A DNA stretch of 63,806 nucleotides, the filler included, from Dicyema japonicum (lineage: Eukaryota > Animalia > Dicyemida), in assembly GCA_011109175.1 (NCBI GenBank). It is 5 parts of 5 records of this genome, joined end to end, with 100 filler letters (N's around TTAATTAATTAA, not from the genome) between each part and the next. Parts side by side here need not be neighbours in the genome. Positions count along the whole stretch, not along the records: positions 32,514 to 59,435 come from RDEW01000034.1; 4 more parts are not named here. One strand, written 5' to 3'. How positions within the stretch are numbered: the stretch's first letter is position 1; each line of letters starts with the position of its first letter. The notes under the pieces are model-generated. The model was not told the origin of the DNA. It did not search any database and saw nothing but the letters and a program-made list of their open reading frames with translations. A program made the position numbers and the translations under genes. Below are positions 32,514-59,099 of this stretch, one piece after another.

Positions 32514-33185
32514 TTTTGTATAGGTATCAATGTCCCTTTCCCCAGTGGTAGGACAGAGTTGGATGTAAACATTCCATTTAACAATGTCGCAATGGTTTCG
32601 AACAGACGCATAGGTCCATATTTCAGCAGTTCGGGAGGGATGTTGTCTGGTCCAGCGCTCCTGTGATTCTTTAGCTTACTGCACGCACTCTGAACTTCNN
32701 NNNNNNNNNNNNNNNNNNNNNNNNNNNNNNNNNNNNNNNNNNNNNNNNNNNNNNNNNNNNNNNNNNNNNNNNNNNNNNNNNNNNNNNNNNNNNNNNNNNN
32801 NNNNNNNNNNNNNNNNNNNNNNNNNNNNNNNNNNNNNNNNNNNTTCGAATAGACGCATAGGTCCATATTTCAGCAGTTCGGGAGGGATGTTGTCTGGTCC
32901 AGCGCTCCTGTGATTCTTTAGCTTACTGCACGCACTCTGAACTTCCTTAGATGTGATAATTGTTTCCAGCATCCGCGGTTCTCCGATGAAAGGGGCCAGT
33001 TCTTGGCCGTTCGCATTGAATAGTTTTTCAAAATGGGCAGCAATCAATTCGATCTGTTCGTCTGGTTTTAAGATAAGTTTCCCCTTCCCATCCATAACAT
33101 GTACTGTCGCTTTTTTCTTTCCTCGCATTAGTCGGACTGCAGCGAACATTTGTGCATTGTCCTTTAGTTGCTCCAGCTCTCTAAG
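32514..33185 (-). mobile_element. RTE-clade LINE fragment (linker and RT N-terminus), with a duplicated segment across an N gap
   Basis: MFAAVRLMRGKKK...IAAHFEKLFN...ITSKEVQSACSKLKNHRSAGPDNIPPELLKYG...LGKGTLIPIQ. Confidence 0.85.
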
Positions 33186-35899
33186 ATGAACATACTCTCT
33201 ATCACAATTGTGTCAATATAAATCAACGTAAGTTGGGTTCCATTTTCAACTTTCAGTTCAGAATAATTTCCGTAAAACTCTTTTATATTAATTCTCCATG
33301 TTCTCATATAAAATGGGATGCTAACATGTAGTTCTGTCTTATTGTATTTAGTTTGTAGCACTTGGATGAGTATATCGCTTAATTATTATTAATATTATTA
33401 TCGCATTCCTTTAATTCTGTAGTCACAAAGTGCTGTCATATGCAGGCAGAGAATTAACAACGACCAAGATGAGGACTTTGATAGAGCGAATCGGAATCAT
33501 TAATATTATTATCGCATTCCTTTAATTCTGTAGTCACAAAGTGCTGTCATATGCAGGCAGAGAATTAACAACGACCAAGATGAGGACTTTGATAGAGCGA
33601 ATTGGAATCATGAAATAGTTCGTGCTTGGACATTAATTAATAACATTTTCCATGTCTTGGTACTTTGGTTAAAGATTTATTTTCCATCATATAGGTGATA
33701 GTATTGACCCTTCGCCCACTTACAAAAACAAAAATCGATTCAGCAGGATTTACTGGATAACAACAAATGGATTTAACACCTAAATTAACTACTGGATTAC
33801 ATGGATGAGAGGTAAGTAACATACTTCTGGAAGATGATTACATCGGGTAGGGTTGATCAAATTTAATTATTAAGCTAATATTGTTAAACATAAAATATTG
33901 CCAACTCTCAGAAAAGCCGCTAAAACTAGGGTCAACGATTTTCACGTCAAATCATGATAGTTCAAAGAAAGCAGCAGAGATCCTGAACAACTATTAATTT
34001 AAATTAATTTTAATTTATTCAACCAAAACCACCGTCAAATCTAAAATAACCAAATTTCAGGTGATCTCAGCTTCCCTCAACAATCTCCGCATCTTTTATC
34101 GTTGTTCTGACTCTGTCCCTGCGCATTCTTTTGACATGACGAGTCTCCACCGAAATTGTGCCCGGATGTGTAGAAAGAGCCGTCCAGGGGAACTTCTCTG
34201 GATGATCGTTGACAAATGGTTTTTTGGATACATTTTGACTTGTATCTTACGTTACCAGACATGGCAACCACATGACGAACGTTAATTAATGGAATTAGGA
34301 ACAGACGAAAAAAACAGAAACTTTAAACAGATAGAACGAAGCATCACATGGCGTTACGTGGCTTTTTTAATCTATTCCAAAAAAGGAAGATTCGATGATG
34401 TGAACAACAATTCCTATCAAAAATAAAGAGGAGGTCCGAGTTCAACTTTCTTGGAAAAAATTATTATATTTTTACTAACATTGATGAGTAAATTTAATAA
34501 AATATTTATTTAAAAATATAAATTAAAATTTTTTTTAACTGGTCGACCATCATTAATTTATTATACACGTTGTCATTGGTTCTCGTGGGCTTTGTGGTTG
34601 TGTTTTGTATTTTCCTGTACGTTTCTTCAACATTGAAAGTAACAGTTTTATCAAATTTTTATTGGATAAATATTTGATTCATCAATAAATTGTCATTATG
34701 TTTTTTTTAATTCTGAAGAAATGATGTGGATGTACAATTCCCTCTCTAAATGGTCTAGGCGGTGTTCACAAAAACATTATGATTCCTTGTTAATTTTATA
34801 TTTATTAAAAATCAATTGCTGCATCGATGATAAAAATACTATGATTTGACTTAATGATGTATTCCAATATTTACTACATTTCCCAACCATTTGAGCCGAT
34901 ACATGAATTCAATGGACGAATACTCCATTTTTTAACATTCATAAATCCTTTCTATTTTCCTACCCAAGATCACTGGACTTCCGATGCTTAAGAAAGACAT
35001 TATAAAGATAGGTTGAAAATAGAAAATTTCTAAGACTCTAAAAGCTACAATTTCTCAGTCAAAATTACAGTTATTCTCAAAATATTATTATTTCAAGTTG
35101 TATTAGAATGATGTTTTGTGAGTGAAATAAGGACTGTTCGAGATTTTCAGACAAATCAATTCTTCCTGCATTGTGTCGTTACTTAATGGAATATTGCTTA
35201 GTAATTCAGTAGATTTCCAACCAGAATATTTTTATTAACAATTTGCGCGAAAAAGTACAGATCTCTCAGTAATCAGGATTACCTATATAAATTAAAATAA
35301 AGAAAATCCGGTGGTGGCCATGATTTCTGCAACTTTTTTTTTCCTGAAGAGTTTCAGGATTTGTCGCTATTAGTTGAGTTATTTTTGTAGTTTTTCCTTT
35401 GGCTTTCAGAAAATTTCAATATCTTTTCCTATTGAGGATACTTGCTTTTTGGGTGTTCTAATAAGCGAGATGGCTTCATTGTTCCTTCATAGACCCACGT
35501 AAATTAAGTGGATCCTTTGAATTTTGAGTAAAACCATACGATAAATATTTCTTCTTCAACATTCAATTTGAAGTATTGTTCATTATGCAATTTATCCTTG
35601 GCTATCAACTTGTATTCCGTCATTGCTCCATCAAGTAATCTTCCAGTGAAACTGCTTCTATTTGGACTTATGTTCATTTTCCAATGTATCATGGGATTAT
35701 GCCAACTTGAATCTGATCATTTCTCAAGTTCTCTTCAAATAAACTGTTTTGTTGCTTTGAGGAAAATTATTAATGGCACTTTCATTAGATATTCAATGAA
35801 GGACCGAGGAGTTACTATTTGTTCTACAGCATCTATTTAACGCAAGTATCAAGTGTGGGTATGTTCCGGATTGGTGGAAGAATTCTATAGTTAAGATAG

Positions 35900-36707
35900 T
35901 CGGTCTTTAAACCTGCTTTACCCAGGAGGGACCTTGAATGCCACCCTGGGCGGTGTACTTGAAGAATACATGCGGACTAACTTCCGGTTACGTCCGCATG
36001 GTGAAGACTTCGCACGGATTCCAGGCTTGATTTTGAGAAAAATAACACTTAGAAAGAGGTACTTGCGATTCCGTGCGAAATGCACCTACGAGGAGAACAG
36101 GATCTTCTATCAGAGGAAGGTGAAAACGTTGAGAAGGGAAATCAGGAAGGCGCTCGTTGACTTCCAGAGCGACAAATGGAGGAAATCTTGCGAGAAGGTG
36201 AACCCGGCATGGCCGGACTTCTGTAGTCAACTGAATCGCCTGTCGGGGAAAGGGGAATAGTCGTCTGCGCGTACCTTGTGTCGTGCGATGGTTCTAAAAC
36301 CTCGGACCCGGCTGAAATAGCGAGCATTTTGCAGGTACCTTTGGAGAAGTCACTGCAGTTCGACCGGAGAAATTCGTCGAAATGTCTGCTCGACAAAGTA
36401 TTGAGGATGTCATCTCTACGGAGAGGCGCAAGCGAAGCTACTCTCGGGGGAATCCGAACATGACATTTATAACTGAGGAGGAGGTCCGGAACGCGATAAT
36501 AAAATCGAAGAACAACGCACCGGGCCAGGAAAATATATCCATGGCCCTTTTCAAGATAGGACCTACAAGTCTTCTGGCGACTTTGGTAAGGTTGTACAAC
36601 GGTAGCTTCAGGTTGGGTTACGTTCCTAGGCGTTGGAAGGAAGCGGAACTGGTTTTTGTAAGGAAACCAGGAAAACCTCCTGAAGACCCTAATAGCTACC
36701 GCCCTAN
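35900..36707 (+). mobile_element. Jockey/R1-like LINE linker and RT N-terminus
   Basis: ITEEEVRNAIIKSKNNAPGQENI...LYNGSFRLGYVPRRWKEAELVFVRKPGKPPEDPNSYRP. Confidence 0.85.
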
Positions 36708-36709
36708 AA

Positions 36710-36981
36710 TAAGCATGTCCATCATGGAAGTTTGCGATATACTCATCCAAACGCAACAAACTAAATACAATAAGACAGAGCTACATGTTAGCATCCCACA
36801 TTATATGAGAACATGGAGAATTAATATAAAAGAGTTTTATGGAAATTATTCTGAACTGAAAGTTAAATATGGAACCCAACTTACGTTGATTTATATTGAC
36901 AAAATTGTGATAGAGAGTATGTTCATGAGATATTACACAGACCAACCTCCATCGATAAAGATTCTTCATTTATTTAAATAA
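36710..36981 (+). other. Unassigned coding-like segment present twice (second copy at 33185-33365, minus strand)
   Basis: TKYNKTELHVSIP.YMRTWRINIKEFYGNYSELKV..GTQLTLIYID.IVIESMF is open and conserved in both copies. Confidence 0.5.
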
Positions 36982-37168
36982 TTTATATATAATATAGATC
37001 CTAACAAATTTGGTCGCAAAAAGAATAAGATTTGAAAGCCATGTTGAACCGATTACCAGGTATAAGATCCTTAAATTGAAAAGATTATTTATTCATTATA
37101 AATAATATAATACAAATTTATAAATTCAAATAAAAAATTAAATTAAATTTATATTAAGGTCATCAATT

Positions 37169-38091
37169 ATGGAAGCACCTTCATTATATGCATTATGCAT
37201 CAATAATATTCGAACGAACGTTAAAGAACAAAAATATATAAAATTAAGCGATAAATCTAAGAAAATGATTTCCAAACACCTTCATTATATGCATTATGCA
37301 TCAAAAATATTCGAACGAACGTTAAAGAACAAAAATATATAAAATTAAGCGATAAATCTAAGAAAATGATTTGCAAAAGAACTCTTAACGAATTGAAATA
37401 TTTGATTCCTCACTCTAAGAGAAATCTACTTTTTAAAGATTCATTTTTAAATAAAATTTCAGATGTAGTGCAGAAGATATGTATTCGTATTGGAATCGCA
37501 CAACGCCTGGGAGGTGATGTTTGCGTCGAACACCAATGTCGCTGTGGAGGGATCGTCGATGCCAAAGGGCTGCACCCGCTCTCGTGCAAAAGGAGTGCGG
37601 GCAGAGCACCTCGCCATGCTGCTATGAACAACATTGTCTTGCAAGCTCTTGAAGCGGCAGGCTTCCCGGCAGTATTGGAACCTGTGGGATTGGACCGAGA
37701 AGATGGGAAAAGACCGGATGGGTTAACTATCTTTCCGTTCACTGAGGGAAAATCGCTCGTATGGGACTGCACTGTTGTGGATTCTTTCCCGAACTCGATG
37801 ATGCTCAGCTCGGCGCAGTCTGCTGGATCGGCAGCCGATCTGGCCGAAAAAATCAAGATTAAAAAATATGGCGAAATTGGAGACCGCTACCGTTTTGTAC
37901 CGGTAGCAATCGAGACGTCTGGTGCGGCTGGAAGTATTACAGCCTCTTTCCTAAAGGAAATCGGGGGAAAATTGGCCCACCGCAAGAAAGACGTGCGGGA
38001 AGCGGTCTGGCTGAGGCAAAGAATTGGTATCGCAGTTATTCGCGGAAACGCTTACTCCGTGATGTCAGCAGCCGCTCTCCCCCATAGTTAA
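37169..38091 (+). CDS. Chimeric ORF: ZYG11-like N-terminus (~71 aa) fused in frame to a CRE-clade restriction-like endonuclease domain (~202 aa). A 101-bp tandem duplication separates the first ATG from the rest
   Basis: MEAPSLYALCINNIRTNV...SKKMICKRTLNELKYL parallels MQIPSLYALCINDFRKNI...SKTMICKRIHNEIEYL at 14852. From 37483 it reads IRIGIAQRLGG..HQCRCGGIVDAKGLHPLSC..RH..N...KRPDGLTIFPF..GKSLVWD.T..D...KIKKY...VPVAIET.G...WLRQRIGIAVIRGNA. Base composition shifts sharply from AT-rich to about half GC at the junction. Confidence 0.75.
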
Positions 38092-38143
38092 TAAATAATA
38101 TTTTATTGTTAATAAATTTTTGTTTAAAAAAAAAAGAAAAAAA
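37483..38143 (+). mobile_element. 5'-truncated CRE-like non-LTR retrotransposon 3' end (CCHC + RLE, short 3' UTR, poly(A))
   Basis: Stop-free RLE frame to TAA at 38089-38091, then ~35 nt of UTR and an A-tract (AAAAAAAAAAGAAAAAAAA) ending near 38143. No TSD seen. Confidence 0.85.
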
Positions 38144-41100
38144 AGTTAATTGCTCCACTTTAGACGATTGCCATTTTGTTTGATTGGCTGTTTAAATCGG
38201 ACATTTAAAATCGATATTTAACGGCTCGTATTCAACCGTATTTTATTCTGAACCGGTCACAGTTATTAACTATGAGATGGTTAATTTCGTAATGTCTTTT
38301 TAAGATGTACTCTTTTTTATTGTTATTTCGAAATAACGGTGTATCTTTCTACTAACCATCGTACAAAAGTACTATCGTTCACATTTCTCTTAAAATACCC
38401 GTTTTTTAGGTATTTCAAGAATTAACGCCATTGACAGTTCCACAGTCTTCTCAGGTGGTCTCATTTTTATTACGAGAGGATAAGTGTCCACGATTAATTA
38501 TAAGAAAATATTTACCAGAACATAATTGTCACTAAAGAAAAATAAAATAATTGAGGTTAATTACAAAATTCATAAAAAGCAAGAAAATATAATAAAAACG
38601 AAATAAACTAATTTATCAACAAATCACACCCATTTGAATGATTTCAGATTTAATGCTTTAAGTAAAGTTAATATCGCCGAGCAAATAAGAAAAATGTCAG
38701 ACTTTTCGAGAAAAGGTTTTTTAACTTGTCACTCAAGTTTAGATGAATTATCGCCAGAATATAATAAGACATGACTCTTGTATTTTGTTATCACCTAAAA
38801 TAACAAACAATGTTAAATACATTAAAAATATTTTAATAATGAAAAGTTCATTTTTTACAAAATGTTATTAGTTCAAATAATTGTTGATGTCTGTAACATG
38901 TGTTAAAGTCTTGATATTATCTAAGCATCACCAATCTTTTGGAATATTTAGAACTCCTAGAAAAAGTAAATGATACTTCTTCCTTGTTTAAAATCGAATA
39001 CCGGATATTACAGCGAATACCGATTTATTTAAGAATGTTCGTGTGGCAGCTTCTAGAGGACGCTGAAAAGTATCAACAGTGTTATCAACGAAGATGGCAG
39101 CGGAGTGAAAGCTGTTACCTCTAGTGCTTCAAAACTTAACGGAAACTTGCAAACAATCTTATAAAATATTGTGTGTAATCGTATATGTGAAGCTTCTGTC
39201 ATGATCAAAATCATGTCCAAGTTCATGGCAGAATGAAAAAAACTGATGACATTGATAAACTACAAAAAAACGTGCAAGAGAAAAACTGCATATAAAAAAC
39301 TGGTAGAACAGATAGAAAAGCAGGGTATACGTCGAACCCTAAGTATTCATGTGCTCATGGATCACACGGAAGTGCCTCCAACTAATGTGCGTCTTCTGAC
39401 ATTGGATTCTCCACACTTTCAATTTTGATTGGAAGATTGGTTACGAATGAAACAGATCGAGTGCGATTGAACTTAACAGATTTTCTTGTCTTGGAAGACA
39501 CGAAGATGCTGACATGAGGTAAATTCTAAGTGTGTTTAATTTGAAAAAAATAGAATAAATCTGACGCACTAGAATATCCGAGAATAGTTGAGATCTGAAA
39601 ATTTCTAAGTTTATAATATAACTAATAAGCACTAATGAGTTAAAATGTCAATTTGATCTTTCATCCATAAAAATTTAACATATCAACTTACTCCGGTAGA
39701 ATGTGATGCGTTTTGGTCAGGTTTGACAGCAGCACAATTCATCTCGAACGAGGTTTGACTGTACAGAGAAATTGCGTGGGATCCGGTGAAGATTTTGTTT
39801 GTTATGTGATTTCTTTAAATCCTCAGAGGGGTGGAAACTGAAAGAATATTTGTTGCTTGGAGGATGTTTTTTCTTATCTCAATGCGGTTAGGATAATGGG
39901 TAAAGGTGACATCAATGAGGTCAGAAATCCAATTGAGACACAGAGACCCTCACAAGGGGATATGATTTTCAAATTGCCTGTTATGGCCATCCTTCGCCGC
40001 AATGGCCAGTCTCTCTTAGCATTTTGAACACGAATTGTTTGTAATGTCCTCTTTTTCCAAATAATTACCTCCAATAAATTGATAAAAATTAAAAATTTCC
40101 TTTTTGATTATCTGTTTGAAGACTTCAACTCATGGTAGATCTTGGGTATTCGGAACTAAGATCTTGGATAGTGGATATAAAAGGAAGTGAACTCTAGATT
40201 CTTTTCTGACAGATTTTTTGGAGGCGTTTAGAGTGCTTGCTCCCAAAATTATCGAGTTCGTCGAGACTTTCAGTAGGCTTGTACGAACACGAAAGAATGA
40301 ATCCAGATTCTTCAAAACATCAATTTCGCGGGGGTAATTCTAATTAAGCTTTGATGTCTAATCTCCCATTAACATCTCGTTTAATTATCATAACTCAACA
40401 ATTTCGCTTAGTCTCTCATAACTCATACAAAATAGGTTGTATCATCCATTCAAATTCAATAATATGCTATAACCAATAATTGAATCATTCTGGCACACTT
40501 GTGAATTTCCAATAGAATGAAATAATTTATTAAACAAAACAGTTAACATAGATAACACTAATTATAACGGCCGTTTTGCTGCTTTTTACAATTTTCCATG
40601 TATTTTTCATAGTTAATCCATCGAGGAATAGGGTTCTTTTTGATTTTCTCATCCTTATCAATTTCGTGATAAATGAAAAGACACGATGTTCCATATTCAC
40701 ATAAAAAACTTTTGTGTTAGTTCCTGCAGAGATTTGTCTTGTATCCTGCTTTACGTGCTTTGTTTATTAACTCAGTTTCCTGATGAGAAAAGTAGCAGTT
40801 TTCCCCATGTATACACGTTCCACTATCTTAAAAGTTCTTGCAAACCTTATTCTTTCCTTATTCAAATTAAGTCTCAGAAGGGTTGTCAACAGTTTCTTTT
40901 AAAGACATGTAGCTGATTCATAAATATCGCGAACAAAGCTTTAAATATCGTCAACTTTACGTGTTTTATGAAATTCTTTCAAAATAATTATGAAATGCTC
41001 AATTGATCTTTTAAAATAAATGAGACGTGTCATATTCTTCCAAGACTATATTTGAAATATATGAAGGCCTTACTTCTCTTTAGGTATTCCAAAATCCTCC

Positions 41101-46160: not shown

Positions 46161-48156
46161 CTGAATTCGATTCATATTGTGATTCTTACAACTACTATCC
46201 ATAATTGCTCATATAAATGTTAGTTAAGCCATGTCTCAATTTTAAATAATTTTTTGGATAAATTATACACACGTTGTCATTGTAATTGTTGTTTTATGAA
46301 ACGTAACTGTACACGATTAAAAAACAAACAAAAAATTGACATTTTAAAGTTTATTGAATTACCAATAAAATATCAGAAATTTATTTCCAAAAAATATAAT
46401 GATTTCTCGTAGATCTATTGATGATATGAGAAGTAGAAGAGGATCTGAATATATGCTGAAAAACTTACGATCCTACATTTCTCGCAAAGAATATTTAAAG
46501 TTTAGTTTCAGTCATGTTATGTACAAATGTGGACAGATAAACGAACACTTTTACTAATTGGGATTTTACTAATTGGGCATGAACAAAATGTGTATAGAAA
46601 GGCATGAAACCTACCAGTTCTCTACTATATCTACGAATAGTACGTCGAACCATGCATCTCATAGGCATGTGACTTCTGGGGATGTTAATCTCTTCAAGAC
46701 ATTCCACGAAGTTCGAGGATAACAAAAAATGGCTTCTAGTATTACGGAGCGTTTTACTTGTCGAAAGTCCCAGTTTTTAATACCTCTGTAATCATTAGAC
46801 ATTAAAACCGAAAATGTGCAGTTGCGGCTACGACGAACGATTTATACGCCGTTATGTGCTTGGTTGGCTCGTGGGAGGAAGATCATCCCTGTCAAAAGTC
46901 TCAATTCGAGCTTGTCACGATTACTTGAGAAGTTATCTGGAGTTATCGTAGTATTTTGAATTTTTCATATTATTTATTTGGACGAATATGAGGAGGATTG
47001 AGGAAATGTCAAAGAGGAAGTTCAGATTTTATGGAGTGCTGAGAATGTATTGAATATCGGTCCGGATAGTAGACAGGATGAAGATAAGGACTCTGATGGA
47101 ACCCATCTGTAGCACGTGTTTTATGTNCTTGTCACGATTACTTGAGAAGTTATTTTGAGTCATCGTGGTATTTTGAATTTTTCATATTATTTATTTGGAC
47201 GAATTTGAGGAGGATTGAGGAAATGTCAAAGAGGAAGTTCAGATTTTATGGAGTGCTGAGAATGTATTGAATATCGGTCCGGATAGTAGACAGGATGAAG
47301 ATAAGGACTCTGATGGAACCCATCTGTAGCACGTGTTTTATGTCAAATTGAATGAAATATTGAATATATGTAATAAATTCCCATATAGAAATACTCAATA
47401 TTGAACACATTGATAAATCTTGAATATATTGATTAATCATAATAGTGTAGTAGATAAGCTGTCGCGAGCCAAATCAATTACCGAGCCACAGACGTTACCT
47501 TTGACAGAAGAAACCAATGTCAATCATTGTCAGAAAATAAAATAATCAATTATTTCAAAGCATACATTAACTAAATTACCGAGCCACAGACGTTACCTTT
47601 GACAGAAGAAACCAATGTCAATCATTGTCAGAAAATAAAATAATCAATTATTTCAAAGCATACATTAACTAATTGTTGATAATTATCTTTTTAAGGCGTT
47701 TAGAATGCACCTTCTTCGCAATTCCCTCGATATCTTTAACGTTGACAAAATTGTTAGACAATTTTTTCCAACAAGTTTTCAATTTTACGAAATATTATCT
47801 TCGTCTTTTTTGTTCTTAATAAAAATCAGATTCGACGCCATATTTTTTCTCGGCAAACCTCCAGAATAAATAAATGAAATAAATAATAATAGAAATTAGC
47901 GAGAATCATTAGGTTCGCCGTTCCTGGTGCCGCCAACTGTGGAATTAGTCACTCAGTAAAAAGTATCATTTGCTCACCATATTCCAAGAAAAATTTGTTT
48001 CTTGGACGGCTCTTTGCATTATTCGTCTGACCTGTTAAGAACGCTCTGACCTGAATTTTTATACCGAGTTATAGTGCTGGATAGATAAATAAACAGACAG
48101 ATCAAGCTGAATCATTTCATTAATAGCTCGGGAAATTTGGACGTTCCTAATTCTGG

Positions 48157-48631
48157 GATCTCGTAGAACGCTAAAAACTCGTAGAACGCTTGTATTTTGT
48201 CATACATGATTCACATAAATTGTAGTTTCAATAATTCATCTTAGTTATCAACATAATTACTATAAATACTCAAATTCCTCGTTATTACTTTTCATTTAAA
48301 TACCGTACTAAGCCAGCACCAACCTGGATCATCTATAACCAAGAAACAACACACGTGGCTATCAGTGGGAATATCACTGTTTTCTGGAAGGAGGATGATA
48401 AAGTAAATAATTTATAAAATCAGCTCCAATCGCATTTATTCAAAAACGTGAGAATTAAAACAGAATATATTAATTCGAATCCCCTTCAAATCATCATGGA
48501 TAGCGGACTAGTCGATTTTGGGGTCACCGCCAAATCCGATGGAAGAAAGTTTGAAATTTATCAGCTTGAGATAACAATATGTACTATAAATGCATATTTA
48601 GTCTGACAAAATACAAGCGTTCTACGAGATC
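48157..48631. mobile_element. MITE-like element with ~25-bp inverted repeats
   Basis: CTCGTAGAACGCTTGTATTTTGTCA (48178-48202; partial copy at 48157-48172) pairs with TGACAAAATACAAGCGTTCTACGAGATC (48604-48631). Confidence 0.6.
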
Positions 48632-49774
48632 AAACAATTTATTCAGAACTATCACGTGTATTGGCAATGTTTTATGGCTTGTCTGGAATACAGGAAATGT
48701 GTTGTTATTATTAGGCAATAGGGACTGTTTGTACCCTTAATGGAGGCTATTCTTAAAAGAACTGTTAAAAACGAATGAAGGAATAAGTTATAAGATCTCG
48801 AGAGTTCTTGATGATAATATAATTAAGCCCTTTGTGGAGGATTAGAATGTTTCCATAACTCATCTCANACAAGCGTTCTACGAGATCAAACAATTTATTC
48901 AGAACTATCACGTGTATTGGCAATGTTTTATGGCTTGTCTGGAATACAGGAAATGTGTTGTTATTATTAGGCAATAGGGACTGTTTGTACCCTTAATGGA
49001 GGCTATTCTTAAAAGAACTGTTAAAAACGAATGAAGGAATAAGTTATAAGATCTCGAGAGTTCTTGATGATAATATAATTAAGCCCTTTGTGGAGGATTA
49101 GAATGTTTCCATAACTCATCTCAGTTTAGGCAGAACTCACTTTATTTGAGAAGTAAATCATCATGTCAATTAATCAAAGACATCGAAGGTAGTATTCGCT
49201 TCTTGTTCTTTGCAGTTTGTTTTTTTGAGTATTTGAGACAATTCGGATTCGCGGTGATTAAAAATTAAAATTATTCCAAAGACCAAGGATAACAAAACTA
49301 AATAACTCCTTGACCATGACTCGTTCCAGCATTTTAGAACTTGTCTCCAGGTAACGACATTGTCCCCAAGAAAAATAGTTCGCAGTGATGAATCACTAAT
49401 GACGACGTTACTCATCAATCCTTATTTAATTATGAAATTAATAGTAAATATCAAATTTCATATCAATTAATTAAAAAAGTAAATTTTATTCAATTAATTA
49501 AAAAAATAAAATTTCAAAATTGTACGTGATGTAATGTTGTCAATAAACTTAATCATTAAAACGAGGTTAAATAATGAATATAATCAATTTAGTATATTAA
49601 ATGTGACATAAAGACAGTATATTAGAGATATCTGGTGATCTCTAACAAAAAAATTTTAGTTCTTGAAGAAGTTGCAAAAGATCGACATCCCAGTAAATCG
49701 AGCCATGTTTCTCATTTGCATGAGCCTCATGGGATGATATGTTGGACAACTATGAGGAAAATCTAGGAAATGGA

Positions 49775-49990: not shown

Positions 49991-51699
49991 AACATGATGT
50001 TTGGAAGGAAGAGTCCCAATTCGACAGTGGTAACTAGATTTTTTTTATTCAGTGGTGACTAGATATACCCTGTAACGAATTTCCCTATATTTCTATTATA
50101 TTGGACTAATTAATATTGAACTTCATGAATTTGATGATCTTGAGCGTCAAATACGGCAACTGCCTACGACTCTCAAACCTGCAAATTAAGAGAGGTTATA
50201 TTCATGCAGGAAGACTTTTAGGAGAGGACTTGCCTCAGTCACTTTCAATAGTGAACTGATGCTCTTCTAGTTCCATAAAAATCTGGAAAGGCAGTCGGCT
50301 AAATATATTCCAAGGTAGGGGATTCTACGAGCAATTAAATCAAGGATATGGCATTTGGCTACAATCCCAGGATTTCTCGTCTCAAATATGCAATAACCGA
50401 CAAGGACACATAGATATTCAGTTTCTCAGACCACTCTGACTCAATAATTGCTTGATAAAATTAATTGTAAAAAATGCATGGAGGAACCCAATGTTGACTC
50501 TCAAAACCATGCTATTTGAACACAAATACGGGATGAAGGGTTCTGATGAAGACTGCACCTCTGCTACCTCTCAACTTGTGGAACTGGTATGCCGTGAGGA
50601 CATCCAATTGGACTCTAACGGAGATATTTCAGCTGCTGTGGAGATGGGGAATAACAAGGAGTTGACGGCACAATTTTCTTTTAAGAGAAAGAGAGGGATT
50701 ACCAGCAATCTGGATNAACACAAATACGGGATGAAGGGTTCTGATGAAGACTGCACCTCTGCTACCTCTCAACTTGTGGAACTGGTATGCCGTGAGGACA
50801 TCCCATTGGACTCTAACGGAGATATTTCAGCTGCTGTGGAGATGGGGAATAACAAGGAGTTGACGGCACAATTTTCTTTTAAGAGAAAGAGAGGGATTAC
50901 CAGCAATCTGGATCAAAATCTGCTTAATTAGACAATTTACTCGTTTACTTTGTTAATCTTCATTATTGAGTTTATTAGTTTTTTAATTTAATGATGTGGT
51001 AGTTTATAAAGATATATTTTTAATTTATATTTTCTAAACAATTGAAATCTATACTTTAATACTTTTTGTTTTTTTATAAATTAATTAAAAAAGAAATTCA
51101 TTTTTTAAATTATAAATAACTATGATTTAATTTATATTTTCTAAACAATTGAAATCTATACTTTAATACTTTTTGTTTTTTTATAAATTAATTAAAAAAG
51201 AAATTCATTTTTTAAATTATAAATAACTATGACGACAGAATGGCGAAGGCGTCTGATAATTGTCAATTCGAGTTTCTGCCTCAACCAGAGCCTTTCCTGT
51301 GGCGAGATGCTTCCAATCCTGGAGAGATGTGGTCAAATGGTGTTGGCATTGCTGACAGCAGTGTGTCTCCACAGCAATGAGGGTGAAATGGGATTGGCAT
51401 AGATGACAGATGGCTCAATGAATTGTTTGAGGAAATAAGGATTAAACAATAAAAAACATATTTTACTTTAATATTCTGAACTTCGCTGAAATCTTTATTT
51501 CATAGATTTGTTGTCCCAATCTGTTCAGCTATACTATACAATTTGTTTTGTATATTGATTAATTTATGATTTTTACTGATAGGATAAGATGTATTACAAG
51601 AATTATTCAGACAGGAGGGCGCTTTCGATAAGTGTGGGTGATGATATATAGTGTTTGATAACACATGGACTATTGAAATAAGAGCTATGGATACGTTTG

Positions 51700-51890: not shown

Positions 51891-54479
51891 TTTCATGTTA
51901 ATTAGTATTATTAACTCTGACCTCCCTCCCTTGTAGCAGGCCAGTCATACTCAGGAGTTCAGAAGCTAGTGCTGAACGCTTCTATAGGTCTTTGATGTTC
52001 ACCTGAGGCCCCTTTAGGGGAAAGCTTCTTGTTGAATTAATTATAATTTCTCCGGACGTGGAAACCAAAAGCCCAACTCGACTCTGAGTAGAAAGTGTCA
52101 AGAACGTAGTTGTGTAAGGGTCCTCCTTGTTTCTCTGTCAAGGGTATCCTCCGAGCCATTTATCAATGGGGGAGAGCCATCCAACAGATCGTTCCAAAAC
52201 AATCTTGGATTGGCTTTGGTGGAGATGTGGTCATGTATTATCTTTAACTTGGTTTTATCAGGTGGAGACTGAAGAATTTTACCCAGTTCACGTAATCGGA
52301 TATTTTCAGAGATCGAATAGACAAATTAAAAAATAATGAAAACTTTGATTGAATAAGCCATATATCTTGGATTGGCTTCGGTGAAGATGTGGTCATGAAT
52401 TATCTTTAACTTGGTTTTATCAAGTGGAGACTGAAGAATTTTACCCAGTTCACGTAATCGGATATTTTCAGAGATCGAATAGACAAATTAAAAAATAATG
52501 AGAACTTTGATTGAATAAGCCATATTGAAGAAAACTCTTGAGAGTGCTGTCATATGGGATGAAATATTTGATAAGCTCATAATCGAACATAAACAGTTAC
52601 ACAATTATAGAGATAACGTGGATGAAGTCAATATTTTGAAAACAATTAAGAAAGTGGGTACAAATTACATCAACAGCCTTAGATTTTATTTTAACAAAAT
52701 TTCAAATTTCGAGGAGGTGAGTATAAAAATATACAGGAAAGTAAATGTTAGTTAGTAAGTTACAGAATGTGGAGATTCTGACGTGGATTCCAAAACATTG
52801 AAGAGCGATATCTCAAAATTTTGGCAATCTTATAGAAATTTCAGATGCGCGAAAAAAGAAGAGATAAAAATAATTTCATAAAGTAAAAAATCAATGAGCA
52901 ACAAAGGAACTTATGCAATAATTTTATTTGAACTCCACGTAGAAACTGTGTGGGAAACTATGATACTCACATAGGTTTTGAGATGAACGCTGCTTGTATT
53001 AGAAATTTCTAATAATTCAGAAATTTTACTAATAAAGTTAATGGAATACTAACATACTTACAATATCCTTTGAACAGAATTGAAATATCGATAACAGTGC
53101 AAACTTAATCCTATGGGAGAAAAACGACAATTTCAGGATACCACTTTGCCATAACAACAAGGGACTAAATGTATAAAATCCTAAATAGATTAGATTATAA
53201 TAGAAACATGAAGACTATATCAAGTTTTACTTAGTCTTTGAGATGTTCATCAGAGAAGAAAATGCGCTTCCTTTTGACGAGATTAAATTTATAAAAGTCA
53301 TTACTACAATCTCTTGTAGGAGGAGATCGCAAAATTCATCAGATTTGAATCTTCCAAACTACAAGCAGGCAAAAGATACGAGCCTCAAAAGTAAAGAAAT
53401 TGAATGACTTGGGGATCTCGGTAAATTTATACTTTTTGGTTCTAAAGTGAATCCACGTGTAAAATTTAGTCAGATTGTAGTAGAATTCTAGATCATGAGA
53501 AGAAGAGATTCTGAAGTTATACTTAAAAACTCGTTTAAATGAATTTGACTCAGTTCGACATGTGCACACTGAAATCAATTGATTGTAGATGATTACTATT
53601 TCGACCGTAAACATGTGAAAACTGTTGGATTGGATTCGAATCATCCATGAATGGGAGTAGATGACGAATGAGGAGTAAACTTCCTTTATCACGTGGATGA
53701 AAAAGTTGTAGCTGTCATGACTACCAATATTTTTGAATAGCATCCAGCGGTTTTTTTGTATCGGATTTGAAAGCTATTAGACATTTTTTGAAGACCAGCT
53801 TTGCATAGAAGGACACTACTGAAGCAACAGCTCACTCAAGGAGTGTTGGGGATAAATCGAAGTAATTGCTTGAAGATTGACTCCAAGACAACCCAAAATG
53901 ATGTGGACGCATAGATTGAAGGACATGGATCAGACATTGTCGGTGATGTTGTTGAATCATTAGATCACTGGGTTAAAGAAAAAAAAGAAAGTTTCCAACT
54001 GATTCCAGACCGAAAATGAAGTCATAAAGTCCAACTGTGAAGGTCGTCCATTGTAGCCCGCCTCGTTGGATACGGTTTTCGCTTGTAGTTGTATGATAAT
54101 GTTGTGGTCAATGCTGGAGTTGTGATAACCCAAAATGATGGTTTCGCAGATTAATGAATTATTGGATAGGTTATTAGAGAATTATTAAATTTTGTAATAT
54201 TTTGTGTCACCGTCACATCAATGCAGTCGGCATATAAGTGGACAGCATCAAAATGTTATTTATATTAATGAGTCCATATAAAATGTATCTTATTTTTTTT
54301 CTAAGTTCCATTTTAAACCTATTTTTAATGGTTTAATGACTTCTGGAAATCTAAGATAGACAACAAAACCAACCTAACGTCATAATTGTATCCAGTTAAC
54401 ACTACAGAAAGAATCCATCCGGAATCAGTATTGTTTATTACATTTAAAAGTTTTCCATTTTAAAATATTCATTTTTAAT

Positions 54480-54775
54480 TCTAAAAGCTATTCCTTGCCG
54501 AAACCTAGGGACTTTTTTGGACGACGATTCTTTTTGAAGATGGAATCGGACAAAGGCTAGGACTATACGTTTGCCAGGATCACCGATGCCGATGCGGGAG
54601 AATAGTAGATGCGAAGGGATTGCACCCGCTGTCATGCAGAAGAAACGCCGGAAGAAGACCACGTCACGCTGCTCTGAACGATGTGATCGTCAGAGCTCTG
54701 AAGGCTACAGGCTTCCCATCTCAGCTTGAACCAATGGGTCTCGATACAAGTAATGGAAAATTAAAAGGATACGAC
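54480..54775 (+). mobile_element. CRE-like RLE fragment (CCHC region), frameshifted
   Basis: AIPCRNLGTFLDDDS...IGQRLGLYVCQDHRCRCGRIVDAKGLHPLSCRRNAGRRPRHAALNDVIVRALKATGFPSQLEPMGLD; clearly related to 37483-37720. Confidence 0.85.
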
Positions 54776-56554
54776 TGTAGTTTTTTTTCAATTTTTAAAA
54801 AGCCAAGAATCTTATTTGTGTGAATTTATCTGGATATTTTATTAAGGAAAAGTAGTGAAAAAGTTAACAGAGTTTTGAATGTAATAATTCTACACGAATC
54901 TGAAAAAAGGAATTTAAAAAATATTCATCATAAGAAAACTTTACATTTCAGTAAAAATATAAGCGATTCTGTATATTTTATAAAAGAATATAGAATTATC
55001 GTCAATTAATTATAAATAAACTTGTCTTGTCTTTGCAACATTTTGATAATAAAAAAATATTTATCTATGTTATTCGAAGGATAAATTATGTTGATTTTAA
55101 AATTAAAAATAAATAATTAAAACAATTCATTAAATTATTATATAATTTAAATTTAGTTTATTTGTCGATACCGATATTATAATGTATATTTCAGTGAAAC
55201 TCTATACAAAATTGTCAGAAACCATAACGAATTCAAATTGTACTATTTAGTATCACATATCTCATCTATAGCATTATTTTTGAAATTTTTTTTTACCTGA
55301 AGCACACCATCTAATTTCTGACTATTATTTGGGAAGCCAAAGAATGTGTCAACGCGTGAAGAACCAGGCATTACTTAACTATTGCATTAATAAGCAAAAT
55401 TGAAATAATTTGGCTTCTATGTGGATTGATTAGAAGAAGGCTTTTGATCGGTCATGAAATTCTGAATCAAGTTCTCGAAACCTCTGGACTTCCTACCTTA
55501 ATTTTGACCTTTGTAAAGAACTTGGTCACAAAATAGAAAATGAACTTGAATTTCAACTGGATTCTACAGTATTGCTTTCTATGACTCATTCTTTTTGTCC
55601 CTTCTGCTCTTAGTGTTTATTCCTACCTTTTAATTAGTTCCCAGAATAGGATCAATTCCAATTCCATAATAACTTCACATCTGACTTCTTGTTCTCAGAT
55701 CTAAATATTCCCTGAAGTGACAGGAAACAAGCTTGAGTAGGTACAACCTCCGAAAGGTACAATCTCCTGAAAAGAATAGGACCAAAACTCATCGAAGGGG
55801 TTAACAATTAAATCAATTGGTTCCTATTGGACCTCAACCTTGACAACCATCGCTATACATAATCCATGATGCNTTAACAATTAAATCAATTGCTTCCTAT
55901 TGGACCTCAACCTTGACAACCATCGCTATACATAATCCATGATGCGAATAATCAACATTGATGAGGTCTTAACCAGCAGTCTTGTTATTTCAGAGAATAT
56001 AATTGTTAATAAAATTCTAACTGGGGTGAGATTGAAGATCTACGACTGGAGCTTGTAAAGACCTCAGTTCTGAAAGTATTGCCAAGCCAAAATTATTCAA
56101 AATTTTTATTGTATATTGAAGTTTTTCTATATTAGTTTCTATTAATACTGAATTTTATTTTTTTTCATCTGATCCGATGAGAGTTTATCTTACAGCAGCT
56201 TTACATACGATTAATCTATCACTAGCGTCTGAGGGAAATTCATTTCACGGCATTCTTCGATTAATGTTATTAAACCCACCTTCATTGTTATTATTTCTTT
56301 GTGATAATTCAATATTCGAGANATTAATACTGAATTTTATTTTTTTCCATCTGATCCGATGAGAGTTTATCTTTAAGCAGCTTTACATACGATTAATCTA
56401 TCACTAGCGTCTGAGGGAAATTCATTTCACAGCATTCTTCGATTAATGTAATTAAACCCACCTTCATTGTTAATATTTCTTTGTGATAATTCAATATTCG
56501 AGGGAGGATCAAAAAATGCACTTCACTTTTGTGTTTTCATTTCTTGGGTGTATG

Positions 56555-57885: not shown

Positions 57886-59099
57886 ATACTTAATTAGAGC
57901 CACGTCACCAGCTCAACCAAAACTTTTGGATTTTATCTTTATCTTTTTGGGATTTGTATTTAAAATAATAGGATCATTAATTATCTTTCTTGGAGGCACT
58001 GTAATATTATTAAAAACACATATTTTCGTCTCTTTCCTTGTACGTAAAAGATCGTCTGGAATTTCAAATGTTTGTTCTACTGATTCATCTTCAGAAAATG
58101 CATTAATTATTCAATTTCATTTTTGCTTCTTGTTCCTGAAGAAATCCCCATGAAGATATTAAGCGGCATATGTCGAGCATTGCATGCATAGAATTGTTAT
58201 AATCGTTTACTAGCTTTAGGAATTTGAATATATCCTCCGAATATACCACTTGAATTTCTAAAGCCGTTATCCACTTCTTTATGGATTGGTTTAACCTAAA
58301 GATGATATATATAACCACTCTAATTGCCATGGTATCCTAGATGCTTTTGGAAGACCAAAACTTGTTTCGTGCCAAATTATTTTTAAACTTCGTCAAGTGT
58401 AGAATTTTGGTATTCTTTTTCCATTTTGGCTNAACCACTCTAATTGCCATGGTATCCTAGATGCTCTTGGACGACCAAAACTTGTTTCGTGCCAAATTCT
58501 TTTTAAACTTCGTCAAATGTAGAATTTTGGTATTCTTTTCCATTTTGGTTATACACTAAGACTGGTGTTCGAATTACGCAGGATATCCCTTTTACTATGT
58601 TCGATATTTCAGGTGCAGATTTTGAGGATCAACGACACTAAATTTGCACAAAGAACATATCAGTACAAGAATCTTTTAATAAAATGAAATTATCCCCAAT
58701 ATTAATCGTCGTTAAGTTCCGATAATTTCATAAACTCAAAAGGATTTCTGTCACGTGGAGCATATGCTATTAATAGTGTAATTGTTGGTTTAGTGGCATC
58801 AAACGCAGAGACTAAATTAATTACAAAGTTAAACCTGACAAAGAGCACACTCCTTTTTATCAAGCGTCACAGGAGTGGTCCTATTAATCTTTAGTGACTC
58901 TCTAACATGATGACTCTGGATGATCCATGGTATCGGATTATTTGTAATTCTCGAGTCAAGACATAAAGTCTTCATTTGTTGAATATAATCTCTTTAAAGA
59001 GTGCTATAGACCAGAATCCGCTATTAAAAAAATTCCAAAGATCAACGGGAACCAAACTAACTAGGTCCTTGATCAAGGATCGTTACAGCGTTCCAGAAA

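Follow-up and report, generated by a model that had tools for sequence, protein, structure and literature searches.

The open reading frame that begins at position 37169 of the window (the whole stretch of Dicyema japonicum DNA under study, 63,806 nucleotides long) joins a 71-codon leader to a retrotransposon nuclease, and we consider it quite likely that this fusion is an accident: a young, dead-on-arrival LINE tail that came to lie in phase behind a short coding relic. A first-pass annotation of the same DNA had raised the possibility of a young domesticated nuclease, in which a ZYG11-type N-terminus with a BC box was fused in frame to a CRE-clade endonuclease, and had named a recent 5′-truncated insertion landing in frame by chance as the mundane alternative. 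It is the mundane alternative that emerged as the better-supported reading, given the context rich in transposable elements, the scaffold joins and the truncation of the element. The analysis covered positions 32514-59435 of the window (~27 kb).

The leader opens with an ATG at 37169 and is AT-rich throughout its 71 codons. Its start (37169-37276, plus strand) doubles as copy 1 of a tandemly duplicated block, and the remainder (37277-37482, plus strand) consists of copy 2 and unique sequence. The duplication, at 37176-37377, comprises 2.0 copies of 101 bp that are 98% identical (TRF); the copies differ at two positions (T/A at 37204 and C/G at 37272), both differences change an amino acid, and as 101 leaves a remainder of 2 when divided by 3, the duplication shifts the frame. 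Once one copy is omitted, 37169-38088 is open from end to end, with 71 codons of leader followed by 202 codons of nuclease, 273 in all. The longest real open reading frame in the 27-kb piece, at 37366-38091 (241 amino acids), lies behind the duplication. At position 37483 the base composition also jumps, from 22-29% GC in 37169-37482, as in the surroundings, to 48-56% in 37483-38091. The nuclease ends in what we read directly as a retrotransposed 3′ end (38089-38144, plus strand): a TAA stop codon at 38089-38091, an AT-rich 3′UTR of ~34 nt containing AATAAA, and a run of A residues at 38126-38144 with one interrupting G. Our reading of the locus agrees here with the first-pass annotation, which had described the in-frame passage from leader to nuclease at 37483, the 101-bp duplication as the sole lesion in a 273-codon frame, and a poly(A) tract after the nuclease. 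The annotation had also seen neither a target-site duplication nor any downstream remainder of a ZYG11-type gene, and the same picture was obtained here. No convincing target-site duplication was recognized by eye, and short ones would be undetectable because the flanks are AT-rich. Beyond the A-tail the longest continuing frame is ~12 codons by direct reading, none of the 83 stop-free stretches of at least 55 codons in the piece gave a Pfam match that could represent the rest of a host gene, no such stretch other than the nuclease contained a conserved protein domain, and a tRNA search for downstream or flanking genes returned none.

The block at 37483-38088 (plus strand) is a motif-intact R2-type restriction-like endonuclease (RLE) of the PD-(D/E)xK kind with a CCHC zinc knuckle. 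Its 202 codons have 273 homologues in a collection of 5.8 billion proteins, the best of which is 58% identical and none of which carries a Pfam domain; a profile search with the block retrieved 24,909 cluster representatives. No match to the R2 chains of the PDB was found by profile at the sequence level. An AlphaFold (AF2) model of the nuclease, built on 55 homologues, reached a pLDDT of 93.3, and the top seven Foldseek matches of this model were all R2 retrotransposon proteins. With VIA-align, the nuclease superimposed on the RLE of R2Tg (9dou_A, residues 1183-1388) with a Z score of 13.9 and on that of R2Bm (8ibw_C, residues 903-1107) with a Z score of 12.8; the next match, an unrelated nuclease, scored 8.0. 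The motifs of R2 endonucleases are a CCHC knuckle, an RH in helix 1, a PD...D and, in helix 2, a K..KY with the catalytic lysine (PMC4838377). All have counterparts here: the knuckle reads C19-x-C21...H31-x3-C35 and lies immediately upstream of the nuclease proper, and it is followed by R44-H45, R77-P-D-G80 (with P78-D79), W94-D95 and K125-x-x-K128-Y129, so that the earlier description of a nuclease with its knuckle, RH, RPDG, WD and lysine-tyrosine motifs intact stands. Across the 55 homologues, each of the four knuckle residues (C19, C21, H31 and C35) is either invariant or conserved in at least 90%. Of 56 strongly conserved columns, the copy in the window deviates at only 2, close to the median for members of the family. 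The likeness to R2 (R2Bm, 8gh6 and 8ibw; R2Tg, 9dou) resides in the RH, PD..D and K..KY motifs and the catalytic lysine in helix 2, and the match spans the C-terminal 200 residues. The identity of R2 to the nuclease block is only 18-23%; R2 proteins have ZF/Myb N-termini, whereas the relatives of the block have PHD, RFX or OTU/C2H2 N-termini; and the insertion described here lies outside rDNA.

Full-length relatives of this nuclease are proteins of 900-1150 amino acids with PHD, alone or with RFX, or else OTU and C2H2, at the N-terminus, RVT_1 in the middle and the RLE at the C-terminus. In the window, homology to the retroelement starts abruptly at 37483, give or take ~5 codons, a boundary placed alike by BLASTP and by a profile built from 45 full-length relatives; the position corresponds to residue 760 of a 972-amino-acid relative and to position 157 of 363 in that profile. 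The same profile found no LINE-like sequence upstream of 37483 in any frame. The reverse transcriptase is absent, which is the state expected of a 5′-truncated copy. Because the full-length relatives carry a reverse transcriptase upstream, within a protein of 900-1150 residues, the copy in the window is 5′-truncated, and the block represents the last fifth of a LINE protein. Two candidate traces of a longer element were rejected. A BLASTP extension had suggested that a WLN motif of the family survives at 37441-37467, and this was absent both in the comparison with a second relative and in the profile alignment. A GC-rich fragment at 35895-36706 (plus strand), which spans the start of a reverse transcriptase and the stretch immediately preceding it, could have been the other end of the same element; by blastx it shows no similarity to 269 RLE-family proteins, and the two are separated by a scaffold join and by a dispersed repeat, which also speaks against a single element. 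A free-standing, open RLE is not unusual in itself. Stand-alone RLE frames of 170-350 amino acids are very common in other assemblies, and one cluster at 90% identity has 101 members; among the members listed, the contigs range from 13 kb to 1.5 Mb. Given this abundance, a free-standing open RLE is best seen as the usual residue of truncation, and open RLE-only frames are to be expected as the normal remains of 5′-truncated LINE copies.

The duplication within the leader belongs to a class that recurs in this assembly, as the first-pass annotation had stated of it. TRF found 11 tandem duplications in the 27-kb piece, 73-256 bp in size and each made of exactly two copies that are 94-100% identical; the other ten lie at 33388-33611, 46911-47344, 47476-47672, 48613-49123, 50519-50913, 51019-51232, 52202-52525, 55801-55945, 56141-56502 and 58312-58548. 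In 6 of the 11, a single N stands exactly at the boundary between the copies, as the last base of copy 1. We take such an N to be the signature of a scaffolder that predicted two contig ends to overlap and butted them together unmerged. Its presence in 6 of the 11 marks the class as unmerged contig overlaps, that is, as scaffold-join artefacts that break reading frames; any open reading frame that they cross is broken or padded (for example, 50452-50931). The duplication at 37176-37377 lacks an N and is otherwise of the same kind as the other ten, and it is probably an assembly artefact made of two unmerged contig ends. Since the duplication is probably an artefact, the 273-codon frame is probably real DNA. 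Contig joins fall at 37276/37277 and at the single N at 36707, which parts the upstream LINE fragment from the contig with the ATG, and these two joins place the ATG on a 569-bp contig of its own. That contig is tied to the one bearing the RLE by the 101-bp overlap with its two differences. The right-hand contig, in turn, includes the junction between leader and RLE at 37483, 206 bp in from its edge, together with leader codons 4-71 in phase; the fusion was therefore not made by the join. The attachment of the start codon to the fusion is consequently less certain than the junction between leader and nuclease.

The surroundings are a patchwork of relics of transposable elements, repeats and scaffold joins. 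One dispersed repeat, at least 193 bp long, occupies 36734-36926, and local blastn matched it at 94.8% identity with an inverted copy at 33186-33378; both copies contain a stop-free frame of ~70 codons and both end at assembly joins. Between this repeat and the ATG, unique AT-rich DNA spans ~240 bp at most. Fragments that look like the N-terminal regions of APE-type LINE reverse transcriptases occur at 32676-33149 (minus strand), 35805-35890 (plus strand) and 35895-36706 (plus strand); they show motifs such as ...G.D.I... and ...P..WK... and are unrelated to the RLE family.

How often such an arrangement might arise by chance was estimated from random positions in host DNA. At least 71 open codons upstream in phase were found at 0.7-1.1% of these positions, and an ATG heading at least 71 open in-phase codons at 0.1-0.2%. 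The rarity of the latter makes it likely that the leader is, or once was, genuine coding sequence and not noise. For an insertion into coding sequence, agreement of phase is expected in one case out of three. The 27-kb piece contains at least five LINE fragments (~1 per 5 kb); if this density is typical, there would be thousands of such junctions per genome, and a chance of 0.1-1% per fragment would yield many accidental fusions of this kind in each genome.

These observations can be accommodated in a simple model. We propose that 37483-38144 is the 3′ end of a 5′-truncated, RLE-bearing non-LTR retrotransposon of the R2 supergroup. Target-primed reverse transcription would have begun at the A-tail and, after ~660 nt, would have stopped or switched template, so that, of a protein normally 900-1150 amino acids long, only the zinc knuckle and the nuclease remained. 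The copy is likely to be young, because its GC content is unameliorated, its frame and motifs are intact and its tail has been kept. Its 5′ end would abut, in the same phase, a 71-codon AT-rich frame, which with the duplication discounted gives a 273-codon frame from ATG to stop; the element may have landed in exon 1 of a gene or pseudogene copy; alternatively, its reverse transcript may have switched onto a host mRNA. The missing downstream remainder fits either a deletion at the target or a retro-chimera produced by template switching, in which the reverse transcriptase leaves the LINE RNA and continues on a host mRNA. LINE-mediated chimeric retrocopies formed by template switching are familiar as U6-L1 and mRNA-L1 chimeras. 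To our knowledge, such chimeras have been described for L1 and not for RLE-bearing LINEs. The L1 chimeras resemble the present locus, on this model, in that the 5′ part of a cellular RNA is joined head to tail with a 5′-truncated LINE 3′ end and an A-tail, and in that no remainder of the host gene follows downstream; they differ in that no flanking target-site duplication is recognized here. Under either route the fusion would be a by-product and not a selected gene. The R2-like fold, the abrupt start of homology, the jump in GC content, the commonness of RLE-only frames and the presence of at least four other LINE fragments nearby all argue for an accident. Against it stand the in-phase length of the leader, which is rare at random sites, a BC-box consensus at a position like that in ZYG11B, and the intactness of the nuclease; these counter-points do not separate a young accident from a young gene.

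The origin of the leader is a question in its own right. The BC-box consensus is (S,T,P)LxxxCxxx-phi (PMC4878042), and the leader contains S5-L6-Y-A-L-C10-I-N-N-I14 at 37181-37210, a fit to the consensus by a short motif that was noticed after the fact. The BC box that the first-pass annotation placed at the N-terminus of the leader is accordingly present at the level of the motif, at residues 5-14. A partial Cul2-box-like stretch, I46-P47-H-S-K50-R-N-L-L54, lies at 37405-37431; relative to the consensus used (phi-P-x-x-phi-x-x-x-phi), its middle hydrophobic position is occupied by lysine. In the VHL box of ZYG11B, the BC box is in the first N-terminal helix and precedes a loop of unusual length, after which comes F50-P51..V54..L58. 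The leader resembles the VHL box of ZYG11B and ZER1 in that its motif, at residues 5-14, falls in a predicted first helix; the spacer from C to P is 37 residues in the leader against 29 in ZYG11B, after which the leader reads I-P-x-x-x-x-x-x-L, with K at the middle hydrophobic position where it departs from ZYG11B and ZER1. The ZYG11/ZER1 architecture of VHL box, LRR and ARM is not continued, as there is no LRR or ARM here and the frame runs into the RLE instead, and similarity of the leader to ZYG11B or ZER1 was detectable neither in sequence nor in fold.

On these motifs, a ZYG11 ancestry of the leader is plausible. The contrary reading, in which the leader is an unrelated short open reading frame or a relic of some other repeat and the match to the BC box is a coincidence, strikes us as possible but somewhat unlikely. 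It draws on a consistent series of negative searches: the leader matched nothing in Pfam or among PDB sequences at E values up to 10, hit only unnamed clusters in the ESM Atlas (recognition score 1724, below the mark of 2300), and had no homologues in two word-index searches of the protein collection, which covered candidates of 39-123 and 150-476 amino acids. Exact look-ups of the window's open reading frames in that collection, which does not hold the host's own proteins, likewise gave no match. A single-sequence AF2 model of the leader predicts three helices with low confidence (pLDDT 66.6) and matched only generic three-helix bundles, at E > 1. The imperfect match to the Cul2 box points the same way, as does the fact that stop-free stretches of at least ~80 codons are fairly common in the piece. 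Set against this, the motif occupies the same N-terminal position as in ZYG11B, and the first-pass annotation reported a paralogue of the leader in a ZYG11-like gene elsewhere, outside the piece examined here.

The assembly joins bear on whether the 273-codon frame exists in the genome at all. The contig with the ATG (36708-37276) could derive from a paralogous copy that was joined through the 101-bp overlap, or the repeat boundary at 37483 could have been mis-threaded, in which case the frame would be a chimera of the assembly. The two differences among the 101 overlapping bases, both of which change an amino acid, are what such a chimera might leave; the assembly consists of small contigs, between which unmerged overlaps and joins by a single N are numerous, and the sequencing run that best holds the region contains a fraction of 0.58 of the sampled words of 36750-38650. 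The position of the 37483 junction, 206 bp inside a contig that carries leader codons 4-71 in phase, is however difficult to reconcile with this explanation, and the 98% identity of the two 101-bp copies is nothing unusual, since the other overlaps in the piece span 94-100%. We therefore regard an assembly chimera as improbable.

We give very little credence to the proposal that the frame is a lineage-specific young chimeric gene, in which a host promoter and ATG would express a VHL-box-like leader that recruits Elongin BC/Cul2 together with an intact, RT-free R2-type nuclease, the whole having been domesticated under selection. Its attractions are the 273 codons that are open once the artefact-like duplication is discounted, the complete set of nuclease motifs, the BC-box consensus with a partial Cul2 box, and the rarity at random sites of an in-phase leader of this length. 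An intact frame is nevertheless expected anyway of a young insertion, and many accidental fusions per genome are predicted if the LINE density is typical. Moreover, the leader has no homologue that we could find and its low-confidence model has no fold match; nothing corresponds to the LRR and ARM regions of ZYG11; no more than 240 bp of unique, AT-rich DNA separates the dispersed repeat from the ATG, which is itself on a separate 569-bp contig; and neither an orthologue nor a second chimera was found, the closest protein in the collection being just 58% identical. We know of no recent host domestication of a LINE restriction-like endonuclease, and the domesticated transposon nucleases known to us derive from DNA transposons. 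A chimera that proved to be both expressed and under selection would be rare, and would be the first instance in which a host recently captured the restriction-like endonuclease of a LINE.

The first-pass annotation had given the clade of the LINE as CRE. Elements of the CRE clade target spliced-leader genes. No Rfam family reached its gathering score in 32514-38100 or in 38160-59435, and there was no sign of insertion into spliced-leader RNA genes, in that no Rfam RNA gene flanks either RLE copy in the piece. The names of the source sequences did not yield a clade either, as the RLE clusters lack informative names. Of the five RLE clades, four (CRE, R2, R4 and NeSL) are target-specific for the most part, whereas HERO is largely non-specific and is the sole RLE clade with many families that are not site-specific (PMC4640811). 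The CRE elements (CRE1/2, SLACS and CZAR) are, like the present copy, LINEs of the RLE type whose knuckle and nuclease are C-terminal; they differ in being mostly target-specific (PMC4640811), whereas no RNA gene lies beside the copies here. HERO elements resemble the copies in the window, which occur in unrelated AT-rich contexts with no RNA-gene target; membership of HERO rests on reverse-transcriptase phylogeny, and for a copy that lacks the reverse transcriptase the likeness is one of behaviour only. Because there is no RNA-gene target nearby and the copies are dispersed, we suggest by analogy that the behaviour is HERO-like and non-site-specific, a better fit than CRE. The CRE label is thus unsupported, and the insertion context does not favour it; the family is an R2-fold RLE-bearing LINE and not a demonstrated CRE element.

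A second fragment of the RLE family lies within 54509-54820 (plus strand), with 67% protein identity over 73 codons (54542-54760). It is the sole other RLE copy in the piece. The fragment has no match at the DNA level to the copy at 37483, loses homology just before the PD motif and sits in a different context; it belongs to a different, older subfamily. With 67% protein identity and no DNA-level match, it is too diverged to inform dN/dS of the 37483 copy. One sequencing run from a different organism (run X6, organism B) contained 6% of the sampled words of 36750-38650, and these could stem from the LINE part, shared with a relative.

Many members of the family carry a further domain directly after the RLE, a complete ubiquitin carboxyl-terminal hydrolase (USP/UCH, PF00443), which gives the architecture PHD-RT-RLE-USP. 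A literature search found no description of USP-bearing LINEs. The copy in the window has no USP domain and ends right after the RLE. Among the relatives, the domain is present in P0131, P0132, P0150, P0147, P0157, P0256, P0142 and P0164, and another relative, P0246, has an OTU deubiquitinase at its N-terminus.
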